Source: Guillardia theta CCMP2712 (lineage: Eukaryota > Protista > Cryptophyta). Taken from it: 32,122 nt of DNA. The stretch lies in NCBI RefSeq assembly GCF_000315625.1, contig NW_005434531.1:124631-156752 (forward strand), read 5' to 3'. Numbering within the stretch: the stretch's first letter is position 1; every line of letters starts with the position of its first letter. This document shows positions 2,907-18,400 of this stretch, one piece after another. The notes beneath the pieces are model-generated. The model was given only the letters and a program-made list of their open reading frames with translations. It did no database searches and was not told the DNA's origin. The translations under genes and the position numbers were made by a program.

Positions 2907-4379
2907 TGTGATCCTACCGCGTGACCGTAAGGAGAGTACGGACTTGCCACAGACCTTTCGGCAAAAGCTCCTGGAGGGAGGAGAGCTATCCCGTAGTCCT
3001 GAGCAGGAGAGAGAGCGGACAAGAGAAAGAGTGTATCAGGCACAAGATACGAAGCAGAGACGCAGACACAAGGAAGAACCAGCTCTAGGTGCTCCGATCA
3101 ATCTATCAGGATTCAAGCCAAAGTGGCGATGAAGAGAGTACTGAATGTGGGCTTGATTGGGAACGAGCAGCTCCAAGGGCACGCAATCAGCGTGAAGACG
3201 GCATTTCGGAGAAGAAAGAAGAAACGAGAAAAAGAAAATATGGAAGCAGTCGCGACAAGAAGAGATCAAGGAACTAGCAAGGTGCGGATTGTGTACAGGG
3301 GGGAAGTTCCCCGATAAGTAATTGGAGGAGTGGAAGGGCCGGGCGTAAGTGAGCAACGTGGACCGGGATCGATGAGGCTGAAGATGAGAGAGATACTGTG
3401 AGTAGAAGGTGGAAGGAAGATGGAAGACGAGGGAGGAGGAGGAGGAGGAGGAGGAGGAGGAGGAGGAGGAGGGGAAGGGGAATATGAATGATAGCAGGAG
3501 CGTGTAGGGGGGAACAAGGAGGAGATCAGAAAATGGAAACTTCGTGGGGTAGGGTTCTCCAACTAGAAAGGAGGGGTGGTCATAACAAAACCAGGGAAGA
3601 GTCGATATGGAGGGGGTAGGGTAGACTCAATTTTGTCGATGGTGGGTCCATATTGAAGCGTTGTAAGTTTCGTGTTTAGCTTTTCGACTTGGGGTGGTAC
3701 AGTGGGGGAGTAGGGTTGCGGGCTATTCATAGGAGAGGGGTAATAGAATCGAGGGGTGGTACAGTAAGAAGCTTAAAACGATAGGAAGCATTGAAGGCCA
3801 TTATCTTCTATTGATTGACTTGAATAATATGTGACCTACAGTATATTCGATCAAATTTCCGGGCAGAAAGTTGTGCAAAAAATTTATGAGGGGTAGGGTA
3901 GGGTCTCGAAGGAGCTATAAGGAGGAGGGGGGGTTAAAAAAGGTAACTTCGTTCGACCCCGGAGAACCCAGGCTTACTTGGGGGTAGGGGTGGTCAGAGG
4001 AAACTTCCGAAGGGGGGTGGTTCCTCACAATGTTTTGACTCGGTGGACCCCACTGTTTCCCATTAGTTGACATCCTACTACCCCAGCCCGCTCCATCTAC
4101 CACCCCCACCCCAAGGCTACAGCTAGTTTGACTATTTTACACTACCTGATTTTTAACTTAAAACTTCGAGTAAAACCTGTAAAGCTACTACCACACTGAC
4201 TGTGAACAAAGTTTACTCAAAGTTAAGTTAAAATCAGTACCGTCGGAGGACAATCAGCAGTTTGAGTAAACATTGGCACCGTTCACGGTTATTTTCTTGA
4301 ATAATTTTTGAACTCGACTCTACTGTCATCTACGACCATAATTGTCCTAGTACTGATTGTAACTCGATTGTAACTCAAC

Positions 4380-4805: not shown

Positions 4806-5102
4806 CTTTAGTGAGATACAAGTTTGTGGTGGCGGAGCGCGAATGGCGGAAGTGTGAGGAAGACGATGGGAGGAGAGTGAGGAGGAGGAAGGAGAGCGAG
4901 GAGACAGACTACTGCATCACGAGAATGAAGGAGGGCGAACATGTGAGGGAGGGAAAGGAGGAGAGCTGCAAGCGGAGGATCGAAGCATCGCACCATACCC
5001 TGAGAGGGGGTCTGTGATGCTAGCGAGGACAAGGAGCAGTCAACCGGCACCATCGGATTCTTGAAGTCCTGAGACAGTGAGCTGTATAGTTGGAAGAGGA
5101 CA

Positions 5103-8100
5103 ATGAAGGCTCTGTGGGTGCCCGTCCTTTGCCTCATCCTTTCAGTACAGCCGTGCAAGGGTCGCAGTGTGAAGAGCTCCATCCCATGCTGGAGTCAGTG
5201 CTGCAGGAAGAAATTTCTGAGCATGCCTAACACCGGCATCAGCCAGAGAAACTTTCACAGGATGGAGCTGAGAGGAGGTTCGGTCAGAGAGCTGGGAGCT
5301 TTCAGCACTCAGTTGCTCGAGTCGGATCTTCAGCTCGCTGACTCTCCCAAGGACGTCATAGCGGTGCTGAAGAAGCACAAGAATGAGACTTTTGAGAGCA
5401 TCACTAACAAGTACATCTTAGAGAAGCTGTTGGCAACCTTGACAGATTTGTGGGAAGAGCAGGATGCTTGGCAATGGTTCGGGACTATCCGAAGAATACT
5501 TGCACGAGTTAGAGCGATGTGTCGTGGATGGGAGAAGCCTCAAAGTATTAGAAGAATTTTGATGAATCTATCTCATATCATGAGGATTCTTTCTGGAAAT
5601 ACGTGTTTCAAACAAGATTGCCTCGAAATTCTCCACATGCAGAATGCGATGTGTCAGAAGCTACTTGAAGACAACAGGAAATGTGATGGAGAGTGTCTGG
5701 CCGACATTGTTTCAGCGTTGGTAAGTTGAAGTTGATTGATGACGATGAATCGAATCTCCATGTGTCTCAATCATGATTTACACAGACTGACAGAACCCCA
5801 GGCTGCTACAGCTTTTGCACATTTCAACGCAACGCAGCGGGGTGTTGATGATTTCCCTGATATTCGGAGAGCCTGCAAAGCAATGCTGCAACGATTTGTT
5901 GACCTTCCGAGTGTTACAGTCACTGATGTGCGCTTAAAATGTGAGTTGTGATCGTTCTGTTTGACGGATCGTGAAGGTTTCCAAAACTATGTGGGCGTGT
6001 TCGGTTCTACAGTGTTTAGACCTGCCTGCTTCCTGCTATTTGTCTCGAAGACTTCTCAAAGATGGTTGTACATTTTGAAACCCCTCTACAGAGCTCATCT
6101 TTCTGTGCAGAATTCACAGATCTTGAGCCATCGGACATGATAGATTTGATTTGGAGCTTAACAACTCCAGTGCAACCCGACATCGGTCAAATCAACGTCA
6201 CTCAAATCAACAACGATAAATTTTGCAGAGTGGCAAATGAGACGTTTGCTGCACAGAAGCCTATATTTCTGTCATGCAATCACACTTTGAGACTCCAGAT
6301 GAAAGCTGTAAGCGCAATCCAGAATTCCACAGATGCTTTGGATATGGCCGACGTCTTTGACTTATTTCAGAGAATACCCTTGATATATTGCAATCTTCCC
6401 TTCAAGGGTCTGCTCCTAAGTTTCTATTCTTTCCAAGTTGTGACATGATAACAGATGAGAAACTGAAGAATATTTTGTGTATAGCTCTCCAGAATTTGTG
6501 CAAAACAATATTTCGATGCAAGGAGAGAACATCAAACTTTGTCACCCCGTTACGCCTGTTTTTCATGGTATCATATTCTTCAATCATCTTGAGTGCTTGC
6601 GAGAGGGTAAAAAACATGGCTAATTATTCTGAGGTTTTCAAGTGACAAATTGTAGGGATTTGAAGCAAATGATTGGCATTCAACGAATTCTCTTTTCATT
6701 TTGATGGATCTGGAGGCCTCGGATTCGATTGTGAATAGAAAACCAAATTACCTCGTGGAATACACCGCTCTGTCCTTAAACAAGGCAAGCAAAGCCTTAT
6801 TCCAGTATTTTGATCACGAAGTTGTTGAGGTGAAAATGAAGTTCGTTTTCTCAACAGGTTGTGATGATCTATTGCAGGATATCAACAATGACGATGTCAT
6901 CAAATTGGCAGCAATTCTGTTGTTTCAAGGTGAGCAGCGTCAAATGTTTCGAGGGAGGTTTCTCAAGAGTGAGCGCTAACGTGATATCCTTCGCTCCATA
7001 GAAACATCTCTGCAAGGAAAATCATTCTCGAAGATGATATTGGAGAATCTTGTTAACGATCGGGTATCAGACATTCAAATGATTCATCAAAAGCTCTGAC
7101 GAAATGACACAGAGGCTGAAAGTGATGTCCTTCTGTCAGTTAAGTCACGTCATAGAAATCATAGGTCTTTCATATCATTTCGGTGATCTTTATTCACGTT
7201 TTTCCATACTCAGGTTTGAGCCTCACATCGAACGCATTTGCAAGAAAGGTATTAGAAACCAACAATCAGTCCTGGAAGGTCATCATTGTTCAACCGCAGA
7301 TTTTGCAGTTCCAAGAGAACGATTTGTCCATCTGTCTGCATACTTTTTCCAACCTCCTACAAAACTTTTCGATCGAAGCTATTCGAGAAGGAGACAAATC
7401 AGTAATATCACGTTTTGTTCGAAACCTGGGGTGAAACGAAGTGGGGGATAATCTGTATTCATTCACGTTTCTATCAGGCTTGTCTCCGAGATTCAGTTCT
7501 TAGACCGTTGGTCAAATTGTCTCGAGTTTTGTTATCAGCTTGTCGACCTTGTGTTCTCAAAAATATTGAAATCTGTACGACTCGAACACTTGTCGATTGA
7601 TGACATTCGACATATCTCGTACGGAATTGCTAGGTGCACAGAAGTTTGGTCTAGTTTGACATCTTGGTGATCAGTGTGCTAGGTTACACAGGAACTTTCC
7701 TCATTTGTTTGATCCAGATGCATCACAAATGCAGACATTGATGGTCGAGCACATTCAGCAAATGTGCAGTGCATGTGCCGATCTTTACAAACTTGACGAC
7801 ACTTGTGACAGGCTCTGTGACTTCCAACACAAAGTGAAACAAAATTTCAAGGTGGGGTCCTTTGACCGACGTTCCATGCTTGCTGGAATATTCGTCCTGG
7901 AGGCTATGGCTGAGACAGGATGCTCAGCTCCTTTCCACTTTCTCGAGCAGGTTGCAGATTACCTTTCAGACAAGCAAACAAATGCGGTGAGATATATTTC
8001 AAGTAAGGCGCCACCCTCCCCTGAAAGTTGTTCATCACAGGATTTTCATCTCACTCCTGCGCTATCAACAAGGTGATTGACGAGTTTCAGTTTGTTTATC

Positions 8101-10056
8101 CTCAAGGTTTCAACAGTCTCCTGTGGTCTTATGCCAAGTACGACAGCGCGGACATAAGAATTCTCGGAGCTGTGTTGAATAGCTTTGAGGTTCGACCTTG
8201 CTGCCATTCTTAGACAGCAGCTCACAAATTTCTGTAGCATCCCAGCAAATTTCGGTGTCTGCGACCGAATCAAGTCTTGCAACTGATCGAGTCAATCTCC
8301 AAAATGTCGCAGTTGGTCGAGTGTTCAGATATCTCTATACACTCACGAGATCGTCAAGGTCATAGACCCATCCAAGCCTCCAAATGCCTTCGACAGCTTC
8401 TCGAGGCTAGACCACACCAACATCCTGTTGATCCAGATGCTCCGGATGATTCAGAAAATGCGATTGAATGGGCTGCAACTACTTCTTGGTCGGGTCCATT
8501 GCAAAATGTCCCAGCCGGTGAAGACGTGCAGGATATCGATTTGCAAACCGGTCCACACAGCGAGAGAAAGTCTGCATGGAAAATCATTCTTGGAGATGAT
8601 CCCACGATCATTGACAGATACCCTGCATCGAAGTCTGGAGTTGAGAATGAAGGGAGAGAGGGAGATAAGGTCTCAAGCGTCTATCACCCGTACATAAGCA
8701 ATACTTTGCTGCCCATTGAAAATGAGCATGCTCAGAATCTGAACACCGTAATATCCAATTCTCGATCTATTCATGGACATTTTCTTGGCTTGGAAGGCAT
8801 TCAAGGGCTTTTGAAGAGCCTCTCGGAGTTGACCTTCCAGCACGTCAAGCTCTCAAATCTCACTCGGTATACACTCTCTCAGGTGCGAAATTTCTTACAC
8901 TTTTAACCATCGTGACTGAATGGACTAATGTTCCAAATTGTTTTTGTTCAGGTTGTCAGAATGGCAGTTTCACATAGTGTAACTTGCTTCGAGAGTGACG
9001 AAGCTTGTAATTTCATCTTATTTCACATCATGCAGCACCGGAACAATCTAACTACTTCTGAGTGTTTGGATGTTCTGTGGTCCTTCACTTATATGAAAGC
9101 CAAATTTGGATCTTCAAGCTGGCAGGAGATGGAACTGTTTTTGTCCGCTCTCATCAATCAAGAAGGAACGAATGCCAACAGAGTGATGACGATGGGCCCC
9201 GACGATCTCATACTCTTTGCGACTTGCGGTAGTTACACCATATCGCTTCTCCCACCTGACATGAATTCGTCAGTTTCTGCTCACAGAAATAGCGATGTTG
9301 GGAACGAGGCAATGCACTGGGTCAAGCAAAGGGTGAGCCTGGAGGGTGCTTCCTTGGTTCTTACTGGCTTCAAGGTTCTCCTACCAGAATTTCTTCGCAT
9401 GCTCGACGAGGAACAAGCCATGCAGTTGATCTGGGCGATCACCTGGCATGGAAGTATGGACGACCTCGTGCACTCGAGCATTCAAGACGCCATGGCATTG
9501 CGACAGAGCTTGAGAACAGCTCGAGTCCAGGAGAATATGGTAGAACTCTTCCTTCTTTATTCACAAGAAATTTCTTGATGGGTTGGAACAGGCGACAAGA
9601 CTTCGAGAAATTCTAGAAGAAGACGACGGACTCGAATCATCACAATATCCCGCATGGTCCAACGAGACCAAAGCAATCGATCTCATTCAATCTCAGATTC
9701 TCTGGAACACTGATCACAACGAGCGACGCGAGTTCGTTCAAAATTCAGATGACAGCAAATGCATAATCTGCTCTGAGAAGTCGCCGCAAGTTCTCATACA
9801 GAAATCTTGCATACATTCTTTCGGCGACATCCCAAAGATCGACATCTTCAAGTCCGTATCTCCCGGATTGCGGACATGTCCTTTGGAGTTCTTCTCTTGT
9901 TTTGACGACAGAGTGTGCAATTGTCGGCCGCAGACATGTCGTGAGTGCATTGCCCTGTGGGTCTTGACATGTTTCAAGAAAGGAATGTTTCCGACTTGCC
10001 CGACTTGCCGGGTCAAATTCTGTCTTGCCGATGTGGTTGAATGTCGAGAAAAGTGA
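5103..10056 (+). CDS. Large multi-exon protein: signal peptide + transit-like region ending MELRGG, OPR/FAST-like helical repeats, C-terminal TMEM129-type C4C4 RING
   Basis: Exon 1 (5103-5720) starts MKALWVPVLCLILSVQPCKG. Repeat-like segments are VSKTMWACS, PSDMIDLIWSL, YPQGFNSLLWSYAKY, TSECLDVLWSF and QAMQLIWAITW. In-frame introns at about 8883-8951 and 9540-9591 join these to the last exon with CIIC...CNCRPQTCRECIALW...CPTCRVKFCLADV. Middle exon boundaries (about 6400-8270) were not all resolved. Confidence 0.72.
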
Positions 10057-10072
10057 GGCTCGAGGCTCGAGA

Positions 10073-12817
10073 TCATCCTTCAAAGATGAACTTCACCCTG
10101 GACTTCTCCTGTGCTCGCCGAGGCGTCAAACGTGAACTGAGAGGAATCGAGTGCATGAACTGATCGGAGACTCGATTGTGCTGCCGCAGCTCGTGTGGGT
10201 TCACTGAGATGGTCAAGGGTTGAGCATCCTTCCAGACTCTGGGCCTGGGCGTCTCGATACTTGACCGTGAAGACATGTTTCCCTCCTCCTCTGCTCCCTC
10301 GTCCTCTGAAATGCTCAGGTCGAAGTCTGCCCCGACGATGGCCGATACGTCTCGCTGGAAATTTTGGTACAAGATAGAATTTTTCTTCCTGTGGACAAAC
10401 TTTGAACATACCCACACGGATGCCATATCGAGCTCCCGTTCGCGGTCAGACTTGACGTCATTGAAGATTGGAAAATTACCGTCAAGTCTACGATTTCTCC
10501 TCAACCGAACAAAACAATGACCGATGACTCTATCTGCTCCGAATTGAAACTGATCATACACAGATATCATGAAATACAATGCAAGATGTTTGCTGAACAT
10601 TCTCTCGTTCAGACTCATGCAGCCTTTGTACACGCCTTGCTGAAAATGATGTACTTTGCTGAACACAAATCGTTCGTTCCAAATCGGGTTTGAGTTCTGG
10701 AGCACACTCGAGCAAAACTCATGTTTGAACCTTACAGACTCTCCTTGGCTTGCATTCTTATCGCCGATCTTCTGCTGTAAGATGAGCTTCAGCTCGCCGT
10801 CGTCACCAGACGATGCTTTCCGGATCATGACAAGTGAGAGTGTACAATACACAGAGGGCTCCTTGGGCCATGTCAAACGTTGAGGGATATTTTGAGCCGA
10901 GATCAAGGACATTTCGACAGCAAACATGGTTGCATTGTCATGGGATGGTGACGAGGCCTTACTTTGGAAGGCTTCTTTTTCGTTTTTGTCCGGCTCAGAC
11001 TCGTCCTTGCTCTTTCTTTTGCTGTCGTTTCTTGAATTGACAGCAATCCTCTCCAGAAACCTTCTTGCAGAATGTTCTAGTGGTCCCGACAGTTTTCCAT
11101 TCTTGAGTTTCGAGTGCTTGAAAGAAGATTTTGCGATCGTATTCTTGTTGTTGGTCCCTGCACTCGCGTGAGAGACTCTGTCTTCAGATCGCCTGCTGAC
11201 TGTCTTGGACAGAGTAGCTACATCTGCAACCTGAAAACCAATTCTCAGCCTAACAGCAGCCTCTGCATCTTCAGTTGTGTTGAGAACAGGCTCGTGCTTG
11301 TGCTTGAAAAGAGGAAACCAGTCATCGATCGGGTTGCCGGGACGAACCTCTATCACGCACTTGCCGAGTAGAGGGGGACTTCCAAACTTTGCTCGCTCAT
11401 GCACACTGAGAAGGAGAAGGACGTTCTGCCCGTCAAGTGGCGAGTTGTTCACCGTCGACATGATTGTTCGTTGTGATTCGTCGTCCCTGACCACAACGAA
11501 GCTGGGTCTCTTCTCCACCAGCACGTGGGTCTCGTTCCAGACAGGAAACAAGCCTCGGACCTGCCTCGTGATTGCTTGCGGTCTGATCTTGAACGGGCCG
11601 TTGGCTTGGAATGAGTTCATACTCAGTGAGTCTTGACACTCAATACCGTGCTCCAGCTCCAGCTCTTCTTCCTCCGTCTTGTCCGCAAACAGCAACGAGA
11701 CCGCGCAGAACGTCTGAGGGATCAGACCAAAGACTTGGGAGTTTGGGAAGTTCCTGCCCTCGACCACTTGCAGGTCGAACGCATAGGCCGTCTGATCCTC
11801 GTGGTCGGATGGCAGCGATAGCACTTCATCCTCTTCCTCCACTGAGATGTCTGGCGAAAGCGTCGCCTGCTCCTCCTCTGCCGGCTGATCGAAGTGAACG
11901 TGAGCGAGTCCATGAGAGAGTTGGGCAGAGGTCAGTCGTCCATGAAGATGGTCAACGCTCGAGACTCGGGAGATGTCGGGAGAGGGCGGAGAGGCAGCGG
12001 CATCGAAGTCGTCGTCCTGCTGGCCTATGGGGGAGGTGTGGGATGGCGAGCCAGGAGAGCATCTGACGGCGTATCTCAACATCTTCCAGTGAGTCTTCGC
12101 TGCTGCATCTTCGTTGATCAGCCTTAACAACTCAAACTCGAGCTCACGGCTTGTCTGCTCGGACCAGTGCCTTCTAGGATGAAACCTTACCGTCGCCTTG
12201 AGCGCCTGCGCGTCGAACCCGACATCGACTCTTTTCCTATCTACCTGCAACGCATCCTGGACCTCATCCTGCAGAGCCCTTGGCACTATGTGGTCCTTGA
12301 AGTCCGAGATGTGATGGGAGAAAGAGACTGTGAGCATGTGTTCTGCCTCGGACTGCTGCAGGAGGGTGAGGGGAGGGCAGCCAAGGAAGTCAACGGCCGA
12401 CTAACCTCGCTCATCTCCGAGGGACTGGAGGTCGAAGACACTTGAAAGATATCTTCTGTGTGCGGGGACTCTGCCTCGTCCTCTTCCATCGCCTACAGAG
12501 TGTGAGGGCGTGCAGGGAGAAAGCACATGAAACCTGTTGCCGCAGGTCCACCTGAATGGTTTGCATGCTGTCCTTGCTTTCCTACAGGAGATGTTTGATC
12601 GTTGACGATAGAGACAGTAAGAGAAAGATAGAACCTTCCTTGACTCCCTCGTGCCTTCAATGACTTGTTTCCCTGGGACTTGGTATCCGATAGCTATAAG
12701 CTCCCTCTCCTGCGCTCTCTCCTGCGCCTGCTCCTGCTCCTTCCTTTCCTTGTCCTCTTGCATCTTTCTGCGCATCTGCGCCCTTTGTAGCGCCAGCTCT
12801 GAGACGCTCGTGAACAT
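10073..12817 (-). CDS. Protein with two C2 domains (4 exons; large last exon contains the 754-aa ORF)
   Basis: C2 signatures FDLQVVEGRNFP...PVWNETHVL and FAVEMSLISAQNIP...NPIWNERFVF. Three short GT-AG introns link the upstream exons in frame from the ATG at 12817 (MFTSVSELALQRAQ...). The start codon is uncertain. Confidence 0.8.
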
Positions 12818-13122
12818 CCTTTCTTTCCTCTTGCCGAAGGAAAGAATCCTCAGGGATGTTGGAGATGACGAGGGAACAACGTTCAAGCAGGGAAAGGCGT
12901 TGTCTTCACTGTCTTATACTCATGGCTCCGATCTTGCTGCTTCCCCGTTTGTATCCTCAAACTTCCTTCCTCCTCCTCCTCCTTCTCCTCCCTCTGCCTC
13001 CATCGTGTCTAACCACTCCCTGGTGCGCACAATTGAAAAATTCAACACCCGCAATGCAGCCGTTATTAGGGCCGGGCAGGAGGATGCGGTATGTGGCAGC
13101 AGTGCGGTCGAGTGTCGATCAT

Positions 13123-13245
13123 GGGGAGGGAGAGGGGAGAGGGAGGGAGGGAGAGGGAGGGGGGGAGAGGGAGGGAGGGAGGGAGGGAGGGAGGGAGAGA
13201 GGGAGAGAGAGGGAGGGAGGGAGGGAGGGAGGGAGGGAGGAGAGG
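13123..13245. repeat. (GGGA)n polypurine tract, potential G-quadruplex/triplex
   Basis: About 120 bp of GGGA/GGGAGA units upstream of the C2 gene start. Confidence 0.85.
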
Positions 13246-13759
13246 TGACGTGAAAGGAACGACAAGTGATGTGTGGGGATTTGATGTCGGCACGAGTAAG
13301 ATAAGATGTGTGAAGTACTATGCGAAATTTGATGGAAATAGAGAGAGACGAACTAAGAAAGAGAGAAAGAGGAAAGAGAACTTGGGGAGATTGAGAGGCG
13401 GGGAGTAACGAGAGAACAGGGAGGAGACAAGATGAGAAGAGGGGAGGAGGTTCGAAGTTTTACTTCACATGTAGCAAGCAAGAGAAAGACATCAAGTGAA
13501 AGTGAGAGAGTTCCAAGATGGAATGCAATCATTTCGCTCACGCGCTGAAGAGGCTCGAACAGCATTAGCTACAAGAGAGGTTTCGCAGGCAGACATGCAT
13601 CGCTATAGTACATCTCCCGCTGAAGGCGCAGGATACTCCTCCATCGAGGAGGATGAAACTTTCGTTCCTCTTGGAAGTCGACTTGTTTCTGCAAAGAGAT
13701 CGCCATCCATGCCTCCCAGGCTGAGGAGACTGCGGAGGACGAGGACGAGGTTGAGAACA

Positions 13760-14985
13760 TTAGTAGTCAGACTTCTTGCCGGTGTCCTCCCCAAGAATCT
13801 GCAACAAGACTGTTAGAAATAAAGGGAGGGAGGACGAGGAGCTCTTACGAATTGTTTCGATCTGCCGATGCATCTGAGTTCACACGTGTATCAGCAAACA
13901 CTGCTTCCTATCAAGATTCATCTTTTACCTCATCATTGTCCGACGGCACTCGCCACACGTTAACCTCAAGGTCACTTTCTTGGTCACCTGTCCGCCCCAC
14001 CGTCAGCTCACGCACCAGCCAGCCTCTCACTCGCACGTACCTTGGCCTTCTTGTGGAAGATTGGTTTCTTCTGTCCTCCGAACCCTTGCATCTTGCGATC
14101 GTACCTTCGCTTTCCCTACACACGTACCTTTCACGTGACGCCTCTTCCTCCATCATGGCAACAGACCTGCGCTACAAGAGAAGCTGCGCCAGCCTTGTAC
14201 TGTGACACCTGAAGCTGCTCCATCATCGAGGAAGGCGAAGAAGAACAAGAAAGACCTTGTGCGTTTGATGCATGTTGCAATGGTTGCAATGACTGTGCAC
14301 AACAAAAGCTAGTGAGTCATGACATGCTGATCCCCTCCTCTGATGCCATGCTCTCCTCCTGATCCTCCACGGCAATCTCCACGGCAGCAGACTCATCCCT
14401 TCTTGTCTGTGCATTGCCCCCCACCCCAACTCCACCATCCTCACTTCTCAACGAAAATTTGTCTCTGCACATTCACTCACGTTCTCATTGTCTTCGGGCA
14501 TGAAACCATGGCGAGCAAGTTGGAGCCGCCGGAAAAGAGACCATCGCTGAGGAGAAGCATGAAGATGTCAGCTATGCATCCAAGAGCATGGACGGAAACC
14601 CACCTGGTTGCATGGCAATCGCAAAGGCAAGTCGTCTCATCACAGCCACCAGCAACGTCGGATTGAAACAAGATCCCCTGCAGGAGCCTTTGAGCGCATG
14701 TCGAACCAAGAAACATGAAGGATGAAGCCCCCTCTCATGCTCAACCATCGCTAAGACCTCTCATCGTGCCTAGTAGCCCCCAACTCTCTGCAACGCGCCA
14801 CTCACCTCGGCGTGCTCGGGCGATCCTTCGGCAGAGGAGCGCAGGGGCCGTGCTCCTAGAGAGCAGGAGAAGGGCCCAAGAGCAGGAAGGAAGGAGGAGG
14901 AGGCGAGAGAGGAGGAGGAGAGGAGCAGGAGCAGGAGCAGGAGATGTGCATCCCCGAGCACTGCCATCATGCGCGGCCGCACCAT
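13760..14985 (-). CDS. RPL36A: 60S ribosomal protein eL42 (L36a/L44) with N-terminal bipartite presequence; 9 exons
   Basis: Exons 14985-14806, 14677-14604, 14546-14481, 14292-14256, 14208-14167, 14115-14041, 13987-13929, 13873-13849, 13798-13760, all GT-AG and in phase. Mature part from the Met at 14509: [101 protein letters not shown]. The eL42 identity is secure; the presequence exons are less certain. Confidence 0.92.
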
Positions 14986-15449: not shown

Positions 15450-18400
15450 CTACCCGATGGGTTCGGACAGAGCAGCGTAGATGTCGAAGAAGGAGATGAG
15501 GTCTCGCTCGTACATGCTGTGAAGCTCCTCGCTCAGCTCCTCCACCTGCCTCATCAGCTCCCTCGTCTCCTCCTCCTCCTTCGCTGCCTGCGCCGCCGTC
15601 GCTGCAGCCTCCTCCTCCTCCTTCGCGGCTCTGGCCGCGGCCTCCTCCTCCTCCTCCTTTCGTCTGGATGCTTCTTCTTCCTCTGCCCTCCTGGCCTCCT
15701 CCTCCGCATCAGTCTCAGGAGGTGCGTCCTCCTCGCTCTTCCCAGCTGCCTCCACCTGCACCTCTGCCAGCGCCTCTCCTTGCTGCGAAGTTGTGGATGA
15801 GCAGGGGGAGGGAAGAAAAGTTTACAGGTGTCACCTGATCCTCTTGATCGTTCTTTGGGGTAGCGGGTTCCTGCTCCTGCTCCTTGGGTTGTCCATCTTC
15901 ATCGCGTCCTGTCCTTTGGTTAGTCGCAACTTTCTGGATAGAGGACAGAGAGGAGAGAGAGGAGAAGAGGTGGACGACTTTGTGAGAGGAAGGAAAAGAG
16001 GAAGAGGAGGAAGAGGAAGAGGAGGAAGAGGAAGAGGAGGAAGAGGAAGAGGAGGAAGAGGAGGAAGAGGAAGAGGAGGAAGAGGAAGAGGAAGAGGAGG
16101 AAGAGGAAGAGGAAGAGGAGGAAGAGGAAGAGGAGGAAGAGGAAGAGGAAGAGGAAGAGGAGGAAGAGGAAGAGGAGGAAGAGGAAGAGGAGGAAGAGGA
16201 AGAGGAGGAAGAGGAGGAAGAGGAAGAGGAGGAAGAGGAAGAGGAGGAAGAGGAAGAGGAAGAGGAGGAAGAGGAAGAGGAAGAGGAGGAAGAGGAAGAG
16301 GAAGAGGAGGAAGAGGAAGAGGAGGAAGAGGAAGAGGAAGAGGAGGAAGAGGAAGAGGAAGAGGAGGAAGAGGAAGAGGAAGAGGAAGAGGAAGAGGAAG
16401 AGGAAGAGGAGGAAGAGGAAGAGGAAGAGGAAGAGGAGGAAGAGGAAGAGGAAGAAGAGGAAGAGGAAGAGGAAGAGGAGGAAGAGGAAGAGGACAGTNN
16501 NNNNNNNNNNNNNNNNNNNNNNNNNNNNNNNNNNNNNNNNNNNNNNNNNNNNNNNNNNNNNNNNNNNNNNNNNNNNNNNNNNNNNNNNNNNNNNNNNNGG
16601 AGGAGGAGGAGGAGGAGGATGAATGACCTGGGATGCATTGGAGGCCTGCGGAGGGTCAGAGGAGCTGGAGGGGAATGGAAACGAGTCACCTTAGAAGCCT
16701 TGGAGATGTTTGACAACTTTGACGCTTGCGAGGACACAGACTCCTGAGAACCCGTCAAATACAACTCTCCTGCTCCTCCTGCTCCTCCTGCTCCTCCTGT
16801 ATCCATCGCGCTCCTCCACTTCCTTCTCTGACCTTATCCTCCTTTCTCCCCGACTTGTTCCCCTGTCTCGTTCTACCACCGCACCCTCCTTCCTCCTCCA
16901 CCTCCCCTCTGCTACTGCCTTGCCCTCTCCCTCCTCTCACCGATACGGATGCCCTGCTCTGAGAGCGCAACTCATCGAAGTCCTCCAGCATCTCCTTCTC
17001 TTCCTCCTCCCGTCTCTCCTCCTCCTCGCGTGCATCTGCGTTGTCGAACAGCTCCACCATCCTCCTCCTCGCTGCGTTTCTTGCTCCGTGTCCTCTGAAC
17101 ACTCGCTGGATCGTCATCGCAGCCTGCCAGCGCCCGTCATACCTGCTACATGCTCCTTCCAACCCTACCTGCTCCTCTTCTGGGGTGGACTGCTCCTCCT
17201 CCTCTTCCTGCTGGAACAAGCATCAGTATCCCTCTCCTCTCCTCTCCTCTCCTCTCCCCCTCCCCAATTTCTCCCTCTCCTCCCCGTTTGTTTCCTGCCT
17301 CCTCCTCCTCTTCTCCTCCTCCTCCTCCTCCTGCTGCTTCTGTTCTCCTCCTCCTCCTCCTGCTCTGTTCTCCTCCTCCTCCTGTTCTCCTGTTCCTCCT
17401 CCTGCTTCTGTTCTCCTGCTCCTCCTCCATACCGGCATTGAATCCAGGAGCTCTTGCAAGTAGACCTGCACCCTCCCCCGCTCCCTGTGTCCTCTCCACA
17501 CCCTCTGCACCGTCATCGCTGAGAAATGCATCGCTCGGCTGCTCGTGACCGCGTACCGGCTCCTCACCTCCTCCTCCTCCTCCTCCCGCGGCATCTTCTT
17601 CACTTCCTTCCTTGCCGCATGGCCCCGCATGACCCTCTGCAGGCAGACAGCAGCTTCGTGCTCCTCTGCCCTCCTCACCAGCTCCTTCCTCGCCCGATGC
17701 CCACGGAAAACTTTCTGCACCCTCAGCGCCGCTGCGCTGGCGCCCACGTCCATAGTGAGGAGGCGGTACCTCCTCCTCCCCCGATGACCATGGAAGACTC
17801 GTTGGATCTGAATGGCGGCAAACTCCTCCGCCAGGCTCTGCCGCAGCCTCGCTCGCTCCATGTGCCCTCGGTACGTCGCCTGCAGCCGCAGGGCCGACCG
17901 CGTCTGGCGGATCAGGAGGAAGCCTTGCCTCCTCCCCACGTGGCCCCTGTACACTGACTGCAGCTTCTGCGCACACGCCTCCTCCCACTCCAGCAGCCTC
18001 ATCATCGCTACCACCTGCCGGTGGTGGACGGCGAACCTCCTCGATATGTGCCCCCTGTAGACAGCCTGCAGCCGGTTGGCCGCGTGCTGCCTGCGAACGA
18101 CGAGCATGTCGAGCCTCGAGATGTGCCCTCGGTAGACGGACTGGATCTTACACGCAAGGAAGTTCATCCTTCTGAACCTCGTCAGCTCTCGCCCCCAGTG
18201 TCCTCGGAGGACGGACTGGATCCTCATAGCCGCTTCGAACTCGATCTCCGACATCTGAAGCTCCCGCTCAGCGTTCGCCTCCAGTCGAGCCAGGTGGCCC
18301 CTGTACACAGCCTGCAGCTTGTTAGCTGCCATGATGATCCGATCGATCGCTCGTTGTTTCTTCTTCCCTCGATAGACGTTCCTCCCGAGATGCCCTCGGT

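Follow-up and report, generated by a model that had tools for sequence, protein, structure and literature searches.

The 32,122-nucleotide stretch of DNA analysed here, from Guillardia theta CCMP2712 (contig NW_005434531.1, positions 124,631 to 156,752 of the forward strand; hereafter the window, with coordinates counted from its first letter), holds at 5103-10056 on the plus strand a gene with an unusual combination of predicted domains. The locus is a real, expressed nuclear gene of this cryptophyte alga and occurs as a single copy in its own genome. Its predicted product has a signal-peptide-like start followed by a basic stretch, a long helical body with LLW-type repeats and, at the C-terminus, a RING of the TMEM129 type in which all zinc ligands are cysteines (C4C4). 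We rate this domain architecture as new, the parts being known and their combination not. The transcript and the protein are described by the following features.

4897-5102, plus strand: transcript 5' leader of no less than about 205 nucleotides (nt); contigs X1, X2 and X5 begin at about 4897-4920
5103-10056, plus strand: coding sequence of 21 exons, 1304 codons and stop, from spliced contigs (15 joints seen, 5 derived)
5103-5720, 5802-5927, 5977-6064, 6111-6407, 6455-6606, 6656-6829 and 6878-6929, plus strand: exons 1-7, from spliced contigs
7002-7063, 7113-7164, 7214-7248, 7300-7430, 7478-7633, 7683-7763 and 7812-7986, plus strand: exons 8-14, from spliced contigs
8041-8072, 8117-8189, 8238-8882, 8952-9228, 9274-9332, 9375-9539 and 9592-10056, plus strand: exons 15-21, from spliced contigs
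5103-5162, plus strand: signal-peptide-like start MKALWVPVLCLILSVQPCKG with a 13-residue hydrophobic core, by rule of thumb
5163-5267, plus strand: transit-peptide-like stretch of 35 residues (residues 21-55) with 7 Lys/Arg, 1 Asp/Glu and 7 Ser/Thr
5268-5282, plus strand: LRGGS, the first block common to the marine relatives, from BLASTP of exon 1 against P0069
5283-9539 including introns, plus strand: all-helical body with two-helix repeats of LLW(S/A) type, from motif positions and the model of an orthologue
6122-6160, 8050-8141 (across intron 15), 9048-9110, 9192-9221 and 9381-9452, plus strand: clear LLW units, from motif search
8331-8402, 8571-8594 and 8679-8714, plus strand: conserved blocks ISIHSRDRQGHRPIQASKCLRQLL, SAWKIILG and VYHPYISNTLLP, collinear with P0006, P0029 and L006
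9592-10053, plus strand: last exon, predicted to form one helix and then the TMEM129-type C4C4 RING, from Pfam PF10272, the model and its Atlas match

The gene model is based on public transcript data, as the gene stretch is contained in 15 sequencing runs from 6 studies. Spliced contigs from three runs of different studies, out of four runs examined, directly display 15 GT..AG joints, and five further joints were deduced from the coordinates of contig X1 (6944 nt, covering 4900-10300) combined with the GT/AG boundaries and the requirement that the frame stay open. By this deduction introns 5721-5801 and 5928-5976 have a unique solution, and introns 6830-6877 and 6930-7001 are the sole solution fitting both the piece ends of the aligner and the count of five hidden joints. 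Altogether 20 GT..AG introns of 42-81 nt separate 21 exons, giving 3915 nt and 1304 codons with zero internal stops, and an in-frame stop lies 10 codons 5' of the ATG at 5103. A preliminary description of this DNA had joined the RING exon to the upstream exons as a fusion; the spliced contigs confirm one transcript with a single uninterrupted frame, the intron at 9540-9591 has exactly the boundaries given there, and every element listed in that description was found in its place. The alternative of two separate genes is ruled out by the single frame running through 21 exons within one contig, and it is also contradicted by a transcript of Hanusia phi joining exon-11-like sequence to the RING and by marine contigs carrying everything from leader through RING on the same strand. 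In the few raw reads of a stranded RNA-seq library (run X19) the first mate is on the minus strand in all cases, which fits plus-strand RNA. Within the 5' leader, upstream ATGs are found at about 4926 (short frame to 5017) and about 5017 (short frame to about 5064), and these short frames are possible regulatory upstream open reading frames. For all analyses below, the joined protein was used for frame, hydropathy and motif positions, while Pfam, homology and fold searches used single exons or the proteins of relatives.

The last exon encodes 154 residues, including 14 cysteines, and its zinc-ligand spacing is C-x2-C-x48-C-x-C-x4-C-x2-C-x16-C-x2-C (9760-10011), with a 48-residue insert separating the first and second cysteine pairs of the RING. 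The predicted ligands, in last-exon numbering, are C57, C60, C109, C111, C116, C119, C136 and C139, and they stand in cross-brace spacing together with the residues by which RING-type ubiquitin ligases (E3s) contact the ubiquitin-conjugating enzyme (E2): I58/I59 after the first cysteine, W123 after the sixth, and P137 and R140 at the seventh and eighth. In the family alignment all eight ligands as well as W123, P137 and R140 are retained, being invariant or nearly so. The Pfam family Tmpp129 (PF10272) matches the exon with 32.1 bits (E 1e-7) over profile positions 253-347 of 349; because this exceeds the curated cut-off of 27, we take the cysteine pattern to be more than chance. No generic RING family matched the exon in the Pfam scan at E up to 1, and a profile scan of the whole genome (87.1 Mb, 669 contigs) returned this exon as the sole PF10272 match. 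A structural model of the exon from an 11-row family alignment (predicted local distance difference test, pLDDT, 66.3; predicted template modelling score 0.65; core 70-87) has the TMEM129 cluster as its best match in the ESM Atlas, with a template modelling (TM) score of 0.55 by query over 103 residues and a root-mean-square deviation of 2.9. One SP-RING (zf-MIZ) cluster reached a TM score of 0.47 over 95 residues, and ordinary RING-finger clusters 0.31-0.39 over 58-78 residues. In the PDB, only RING or U-box ligases were retrieved, and weakly, both by Foldseek with the RING model (E at least 0.45) and by profile search with the RING (AMFR best at 0.029). The Pfam score and the shape match thus bear out the proposed TMEM129-type C4C4 RING, and the C-terminus can be assigned to this all-cysteine class.

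The surface of the RING was examined by co-folding the last exon with a UBE2K-like E2 of G. theta (L015), chosen as docking partner with its entire UQ_con domain within one open frame. In this fold-with-controls test the pair scored 0.61 against 0.15 for the best of 3 controls, and the docking runs had a contact agreement of at least 94% and a partner pLDDT of at least 89. Among 78 solved complexes 51 attain the docking mark, as do 2 among 108 mismatched pairs; in the eukaryotic calibration the counts were 39 of 65 for solved pairs without an older complex of similar kind and 2 of 126 for unrelated pairs. The predicted interface comprises residues 58-62, 119, 122-123, 137-138 and 140 on the RING side, and helix 1 with loops 60-64 and 93-98 on the E2 side. 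In the model the RING thus docks the E2 by the canonical RING surface, which appears RING-like and intact; since RING-E2 complexes are abundant among solved structures, the result shows likeness of the surface only and not binding in the cell. The gene of this E2 (L015:1489-2010, plus strand; G000:C69:243004-243420) has the whole catalytic domain in a single exon, at whose end a UBA domain begins.

TMEM129 is an E3 ligase from the ER-associated degradation pathway (ERAD; ER, endoplasmic reticulum) that is exploited by cytomegalovirus US11; it has E3 activity with UBE2J2 and associates with Derlin-1 at the ER. The G. theta protein resembles it in the C-terminal all-cysteine C4C4 RING, the long insert between the first two cysteine pairs and the helix before the RING. 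TMEM129 is a C4C4 RING ligase, CNOT4 being the other one known (PMC4024746), and PMC5127023 gives it three membrane spans. Whereas TMEM129 has about 360 residues including these spans, the G. theta protein has no predicted transmembrane helix, as the preliminary description had also suggested: no 19-residue window of the whole protein reaches a Kyte-Doolittle mean of 1.5, the maximum being 1.46 and the N-terminal window 1.31. Profile positions 1-252 of the Tmpp129 family have no counterpart in the gene or in the whole genome, and in their place the protein has the leader and about 1100 helical residues. Because transmembrane helices are missing, we consider the protein to share the RING type of TMEM129 without being its orthologue.

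The nearest comparison for the helical body is offered by the FASTK and heptatricopeptide repeat (HPR) proteins, which have tandem 37-residue hairpin repeats detectable by FAST_1, often together with a RAP domain. Clear LLW-type motifs occur at about five places in the body (residues 282-294, 737-752, 1016-1036, 1064-1073 and 1098-1121), with a spacing of 43-46 residues. An AlphaFold2 model of the Hanusia orthologue (640 residues, 12-row alignment) is helical with low confidence (mean pLDDT 46.7) and was excluded from the fold search; its region matching 8331-8714 has a pLDDT below 50, and the stretch around the three conserved blocks there is probably otherwise disordered. The repeats had been described as like those of octotricopeptide repeat (OPR) proteins, and of this description the recurring LLW helices and the all-helical character stand. 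The OPR label itself is weak: OPR proteins have tandem 38-40-residue repeats with a PPPEW motif (PMC6212722), whereas PPPEW is absent from this protein, the spacing is 43-46 and not 38-40 residues, and clear motifs are few. No Pfam match to FAST_1, RAP or any repeat family was obtained in any exon or in the Hanusia orthologue, nor was any Pfam family found outside the RING in the exons, the Hanusia protein or the marine proteins, and the genome scan gave no FAST_1 or RAP match at the locus. Further, the genomic stretch VIDEFQFVYPQGFNS, which supplies the F-x-PQ part of the described motif, sits within intron 15 (8073-8116), so that the mRNA reads ...DFHLTPALSTS/LLWSYAKY.... As PPPEW is lacking and the spacing differs, the body would not be that of an OPR protein. 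Intron 15 itself can be read through in the exon 16 frame, and as a FAST/OPR-like F-x-PQ lead-in VIDEFQFVYPQGFNS is superior to what spliced exon 15 provides; since 44 nt is not divisible by three, an mRNA retaining the intron would be out of frame with exon 15.

Weaker signals point in the direction of the FAST-type families. A hidden Markov model of the five LLW units, iterated over the family and the FAST_1 proteins of G. theta, gained no members, and the FAST_1 proteins scored 0-3 bits against it, the same level as shuffled controls (2.3). In hhalign comparisons of the last three repeats with two G. theta FAST_1 proteins the motif is in register, though weakly (E 0.036 and 0.0093, probability 1-4%). 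A language-model look-alike search with the helical part of the Hanusia protein led to RESC6/FAST_1 clusters (scores 0.91-0.92, 172-187 shared features); the RESC6 family itself (PF26188) is absent from the Pfam copy scanned. The likeness to FASTK, HPR, RESC6 and OPR proteins lies in the all-helical body and the motif '(L/F)-x-P/T-x-x-L-x-x-(L/I/V)(L/I)W(S/A)', whose counterpart in G. theta FAST_1 proteins is PQELSNxLWAxAK, whereas the differences are the lack of FAST_1, FAST_2 and RAP matches and of PPPEW, the few repeats of 43-46 instead of 37-40 residues, and the RING, which occurs in none of those families. We conclude that the body is probably a helical-hairpin solenoid with a FAST/HPR-like flavour, the resemblance being at the motif level. 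FAST_1 proteins proper exist elsewhere in the G. theta genome, with PQELSNILWSFAK-type motifs, and a frame of 1543 codons (L011:2372-7000, minus strand; G000:C26) combines PDZ, DUF6832/FAST_1 and a weak RAP in an unusual FAST-type architecture. Among other proteins of similar design, Listerin/Ltn1 is a long helical solenoid with a terminal RING and CNOT4 also has an RNA-binding domain; as Pfam scans gave no sequence match, this is likeness of design and not of descent, and a Listerin-like reading was dropped.

At the N-terminus, the preliminary description had proposed a presequence, and the sequence there indeed shows a hydrophobic leader and, behind it, a basic stretch rich in Ser, the leader and its cleavage sites being judged by eye and by rules of thumb. 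The hydrophobic core covers residues 3-15 (ALWVPVLCLILSV; mean Kyte-Doolittle 2.56) and is followed by C-K-G, with small residues at -3/-1. The first residue of the transit-like stretch would then be Arg (or Val), neither aromatic nor Leu, and acidic residues are frequent only downstream of LRGGS (residue 56), where we take the mature protein to begin. Periplastid leaders of cryptophytes and diatoms consist of a signal peptide and a transit-like stretch that begins with a residue other than leucine or an aromatic one (PMC6105332), and the leader fits this rule by eye in its core, in the C-K-G followed by Arg and in the 7 basic against 1 acidic residue within 35. A marine relative begins with MRWRCSTLTLLALFSATCGRG, 19 residues, and then LRGGSARFL, matching MELRGGSVREL of G. 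theta, and BLASTP of exon 1 against P0069 aligned LRGGS at positions 56 and 54 (E 0.012). The best argument that the leader is a targeting signal is thus that its kind, and not its sequence, is conserved in two lineages, in both of which it ends at LRGGS.

The relatives are few. Searching 1.84 billion representatives with the last exon by HMMER returned five proteins (P0001-P0005): P0001 (640 residues, 75% identical) from Hanusia phi, a species close to Guillardia, the sequence being N-terminally incomplete and without equivalents of exons 13-16; P0002 (849 residues) from marine metagenomes; and three fragments, P0003, P0004 and P0005. Word-index searches queried with P0006, P0001 and a RING-module profile gave near-identical or already known members only, and a look-alike search with the marine relative P0029 gave no usable match. 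The family appears to be tiny, comprising Guillardia, Hanusia phi and one group of uncultured marine eukaryotes, and the preliminary description, which did not recognise the architecture, was right to find it unfamiliar, given almost no relatives among the 1.84 billion representatives. In the Hanusia transcript model a short unrelated linker replaces G. theta exons 13-16 (7683-8189), a difference that could be exon skipping, an assembly gap or real.

The marine and cryptophyte proteins share a series of blocks, namely S-x-D-x2-G-(H/R)-P-x2-A-x3-LR-x-LL, SAW-x-(I/T)-ILG, VYHPYISNTLLP, two LLW units, LPE-x-L-x2-L-x5-A-x2-L-x-WA-x4-G-x2-D, DD-x5-P-x-W and the RING, and their order is identical in Hanusia phi (from its incomplete N-terminus) and the uncultured marine eukaryotes. 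On the marine contigs, which have 60-64% G+C, the upstream same-strand open frames of L002, L012 and L013 belong to the homologue gene, and its start is fixed 140 nt from a divergent gene (L012:6498-8429 and L013:928-2859, both minus strand). The latter encodes a CrtI-family protein resembling carotenoid desaturases/isomerases (TIGR02734, 366 bits), the N-terminus of which (MRRLVALAVVACAIHAAGA/LVAAP) is signal-peptide-like. Because this neighbour begins in such a way, it suggests that the marine organism imports plastid proteins through the ER, that is, has a complex plastid. Pfam scans of neighbouring genes on the marine contigs yielded no informative family. Near-identical copies of P0071, P0087 and P0099, which are clearly eukaryotic members of the marine relatives' clusters, are deposited at NCBI as hypothetical proteins of 'Promethearchaeia archaeon' metagenome-assembled genomes (MAGs; MGB1603069.1, MGB1601291.1 and MGB1606933.1); it appears that eukaryotic contigs were binned into an Asgard MAG.

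Taken together, these results lead us to favour, with middling confidence, a soluble, leader-bearing helical RING protein that would act as a ubiquitin ligase in the periplastidal compartment, which is what remains of the red-algal endosymbiont's cytoplasm; both the periplastid location, which the preliminary description had raised as a possibility, and the ligase activity are what we infer from the sequence. Residues 1-20 would serve as a cleavable signal peptide and the next approximately 35 as a transit-peptide-like stretch, whose non-aromatic, non-leucine first residue would cause the protein to halt in the periplastidal compartment and not in the stroma. There the RING would recruit a ubiquitin-charged E2 by the usual surface, formed by the Ile after the first cysteine, the Trp of the helix, and the Pro and linchpin Arg at the last cysteine pair, while the helical body with the SAWKIILG and VYHPYISNTLLP blocks may hold the substrate, a protein or possibly an RNA-protein complex. 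Overall, a TMEM129-type catalytic module would have lost its company of a membrane anchor and be mounted on a solenoid scaffold, and a soluble RING ligase sent past the ER to the periplastid space seems to us the most economical mechanism.

The cryptophyte periplastid space retains ubiquitin, E2s and a proteasome, while the E3 linked to import is elusive and debated (PMC12412216). The ligases proposed for the symbiont-specific ERAD-like machinery (SELMA), s_Hrd1 (nucleomorph-encoded, in cryptophytes) and ptE3P (in diatoms), would share with the G. theta protein the character of a periplastid RING ligase, if the leader works as proposed; both, however, are membrane proteins, whereas the G. theta protein is predicted to be soluble, has another RING type and is narrowly distributed. 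A more far-reaching version, which we regard as unlikely, has the soluble ligase of this lineage-restricted family (Guillardia, Hanusia and the uncultured marine alga with a complex plastid) working with a periplastid E2 while its FAST/HPR-like solenoid reads RNA or ribonucleoprotein, e.g. nucleomorph transcripts or relic 80S ribosomes. In this way RNA recognition and ubiquitination would be coupled within a relic cytoplasm, or the protein would supply the E3 still lacking for cryptophyte SELMA import.

Several observations weigh against the periplastid ligase. No homologue was found by HMMER in diatoms, haptophytes or other cryptophytes among the 1.84 billion representatives, which makes a general role in SELMA unlikely; this narrow distribution speaks against a core SELMA role and fits a lineage-specific quality-control or regulatory ligase. 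The Hanusia sequence, being N-terminally incomplete, is silent on the leader, and the cleavage sites in G. theta were assigned by eye. The 5' leader holds upstream ATGs and Met54 lies shortly before LRGGS, so that a leaderless isoform is possible. Regarding the RING, the Hanusia sequence scores 26.4 bits against Pfam Tmpp129, slightly below the cut-off of 27, and the marine RINGs 7 bits. Finally, the docked E2 is a host-type UBE2K-like enzyme and not a periplastid one, and RING-E2 complexes are familiar to the folding model, which limits the docking pass to a likeness.

The host-type E2 also enters into the best-surviving of the competing explanations, in which the N-terminus remains uncleaved and anchors the protein in the ER or the continuous outermost plastid membrane with body and RING facing the host cytosol, where by means of this single anchor it would functionally replace TMEM129 in host ERAD or in quality control at the plastid surface. 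The basic residues after the core (KGRSVK...RKK) would keep the C-terminal side cytosolic by the positive-inside rule, and the PF10272 scan found no canonical TMEM129 in the G. theta genome. However, membrane spans tend to be longer than this core of just 13-16 residues, in the marine relative Arg residues precede the core and a typical small-residue site follows it, as in a signal peptide, and the stretch between core and LRGGS is variable in sequence and basic in both lineages, like targeting peptides. We therefore find such an anchor rather improbable. It is improbable, too, that translation begins mainly at Met41 or Met54, or from dual starts, making the main product a cytosolic helical RING ligase lacking the leader. 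Met54 stands two residues ahead of the first conserved block, and the upstream ATGs may favour leaky scanning or re-initiation; yet the transcript contains the ATG at 5103, and no other in-frame ATG stands between it and the stop before it; in the marine relative, where the LRGGS block holds no Met, the leader has to be translated; and the form of the leader is conserved between both lineages.

A third explanation, to which we give little credence, is that of an RNA-binding solenoid of the FAST/HPR/OPR kind in an organelle, stromal or other, whose cysteine-rich end would be no ligase domain but a zinc finger contacting RNA or protein. The nearest look-alike clusters, at 0.91-0.92, do carry RESC6 or FAST_1, and the LPE..L..WA motif is in register with PQELSNILWSFAK of the G. 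theta FAST_1 proteins. Against this, no Pfam match to FAST_1, RAP or a related family was found, the hhalign probability is only 1-4%, none of the residues that E2 binding requires is missing from the RING, whose predicted docking is canonical, and the presumed first residue of the transit-like stretch, neither aromatic nor Leu, argues against the stroma. Least probable of all is a secreted or ER-lumenal protein with disulfide-bonded cysteines and a RING likeness in structure only, since the signal-peptide-like start and the 14 cysteines of the last exon, which would suit it, are offset by a spacing, TMEM129 match and conserved E2-contact residues indicative of a zinc RING, and by the basic stretch rich in Ser behind the signal peptide, a feature typical of plastid-directed leaders in this group (PMC6105332).

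The TMEM129 RING has hitherto been described within a three-span ER membrane ligase (PMC4024746, PMC5127023), and here it is predicted to end a large soluble helical protein. The TMEM129-type module would accordingly be portable, and a soluble form may be easier to study. Moreover, the ligase for periplastid import and turnover is an open point in plastid evolution (PMC12412216), and a RING ligase encoded in the nucleus and bearing a leader of periplastid type offers a concrete candidate for it. With so narrow a family it cannot be the general SELMA ligase, and its location and substrate are proposals from inference only.

Downstream of the gene, a convergent neighbour on the minus strand (10073-12337) is a 754-codon open frame with a C2 domain (Pfam PF00168, E 6e-10). 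The stop codons of the two genes are 16 nt apart, so that their 3' ends must overlap, and the contigs of X1, X2 and X5 merge the RING gene with this neighbour, X1 extending 2580 nt beyond 10300. The fusion in X1 carries no information on the RING gene. Upstream of the gene, a perfect microsatellite, (GGA)13.7, lies at 3432-3472 in a 1-kb interval (3001-4000) of strong G-over-C skew (0.48), and the 1-kb intervals 13001-14000 and 16001-17000 are skewed in a similar way.

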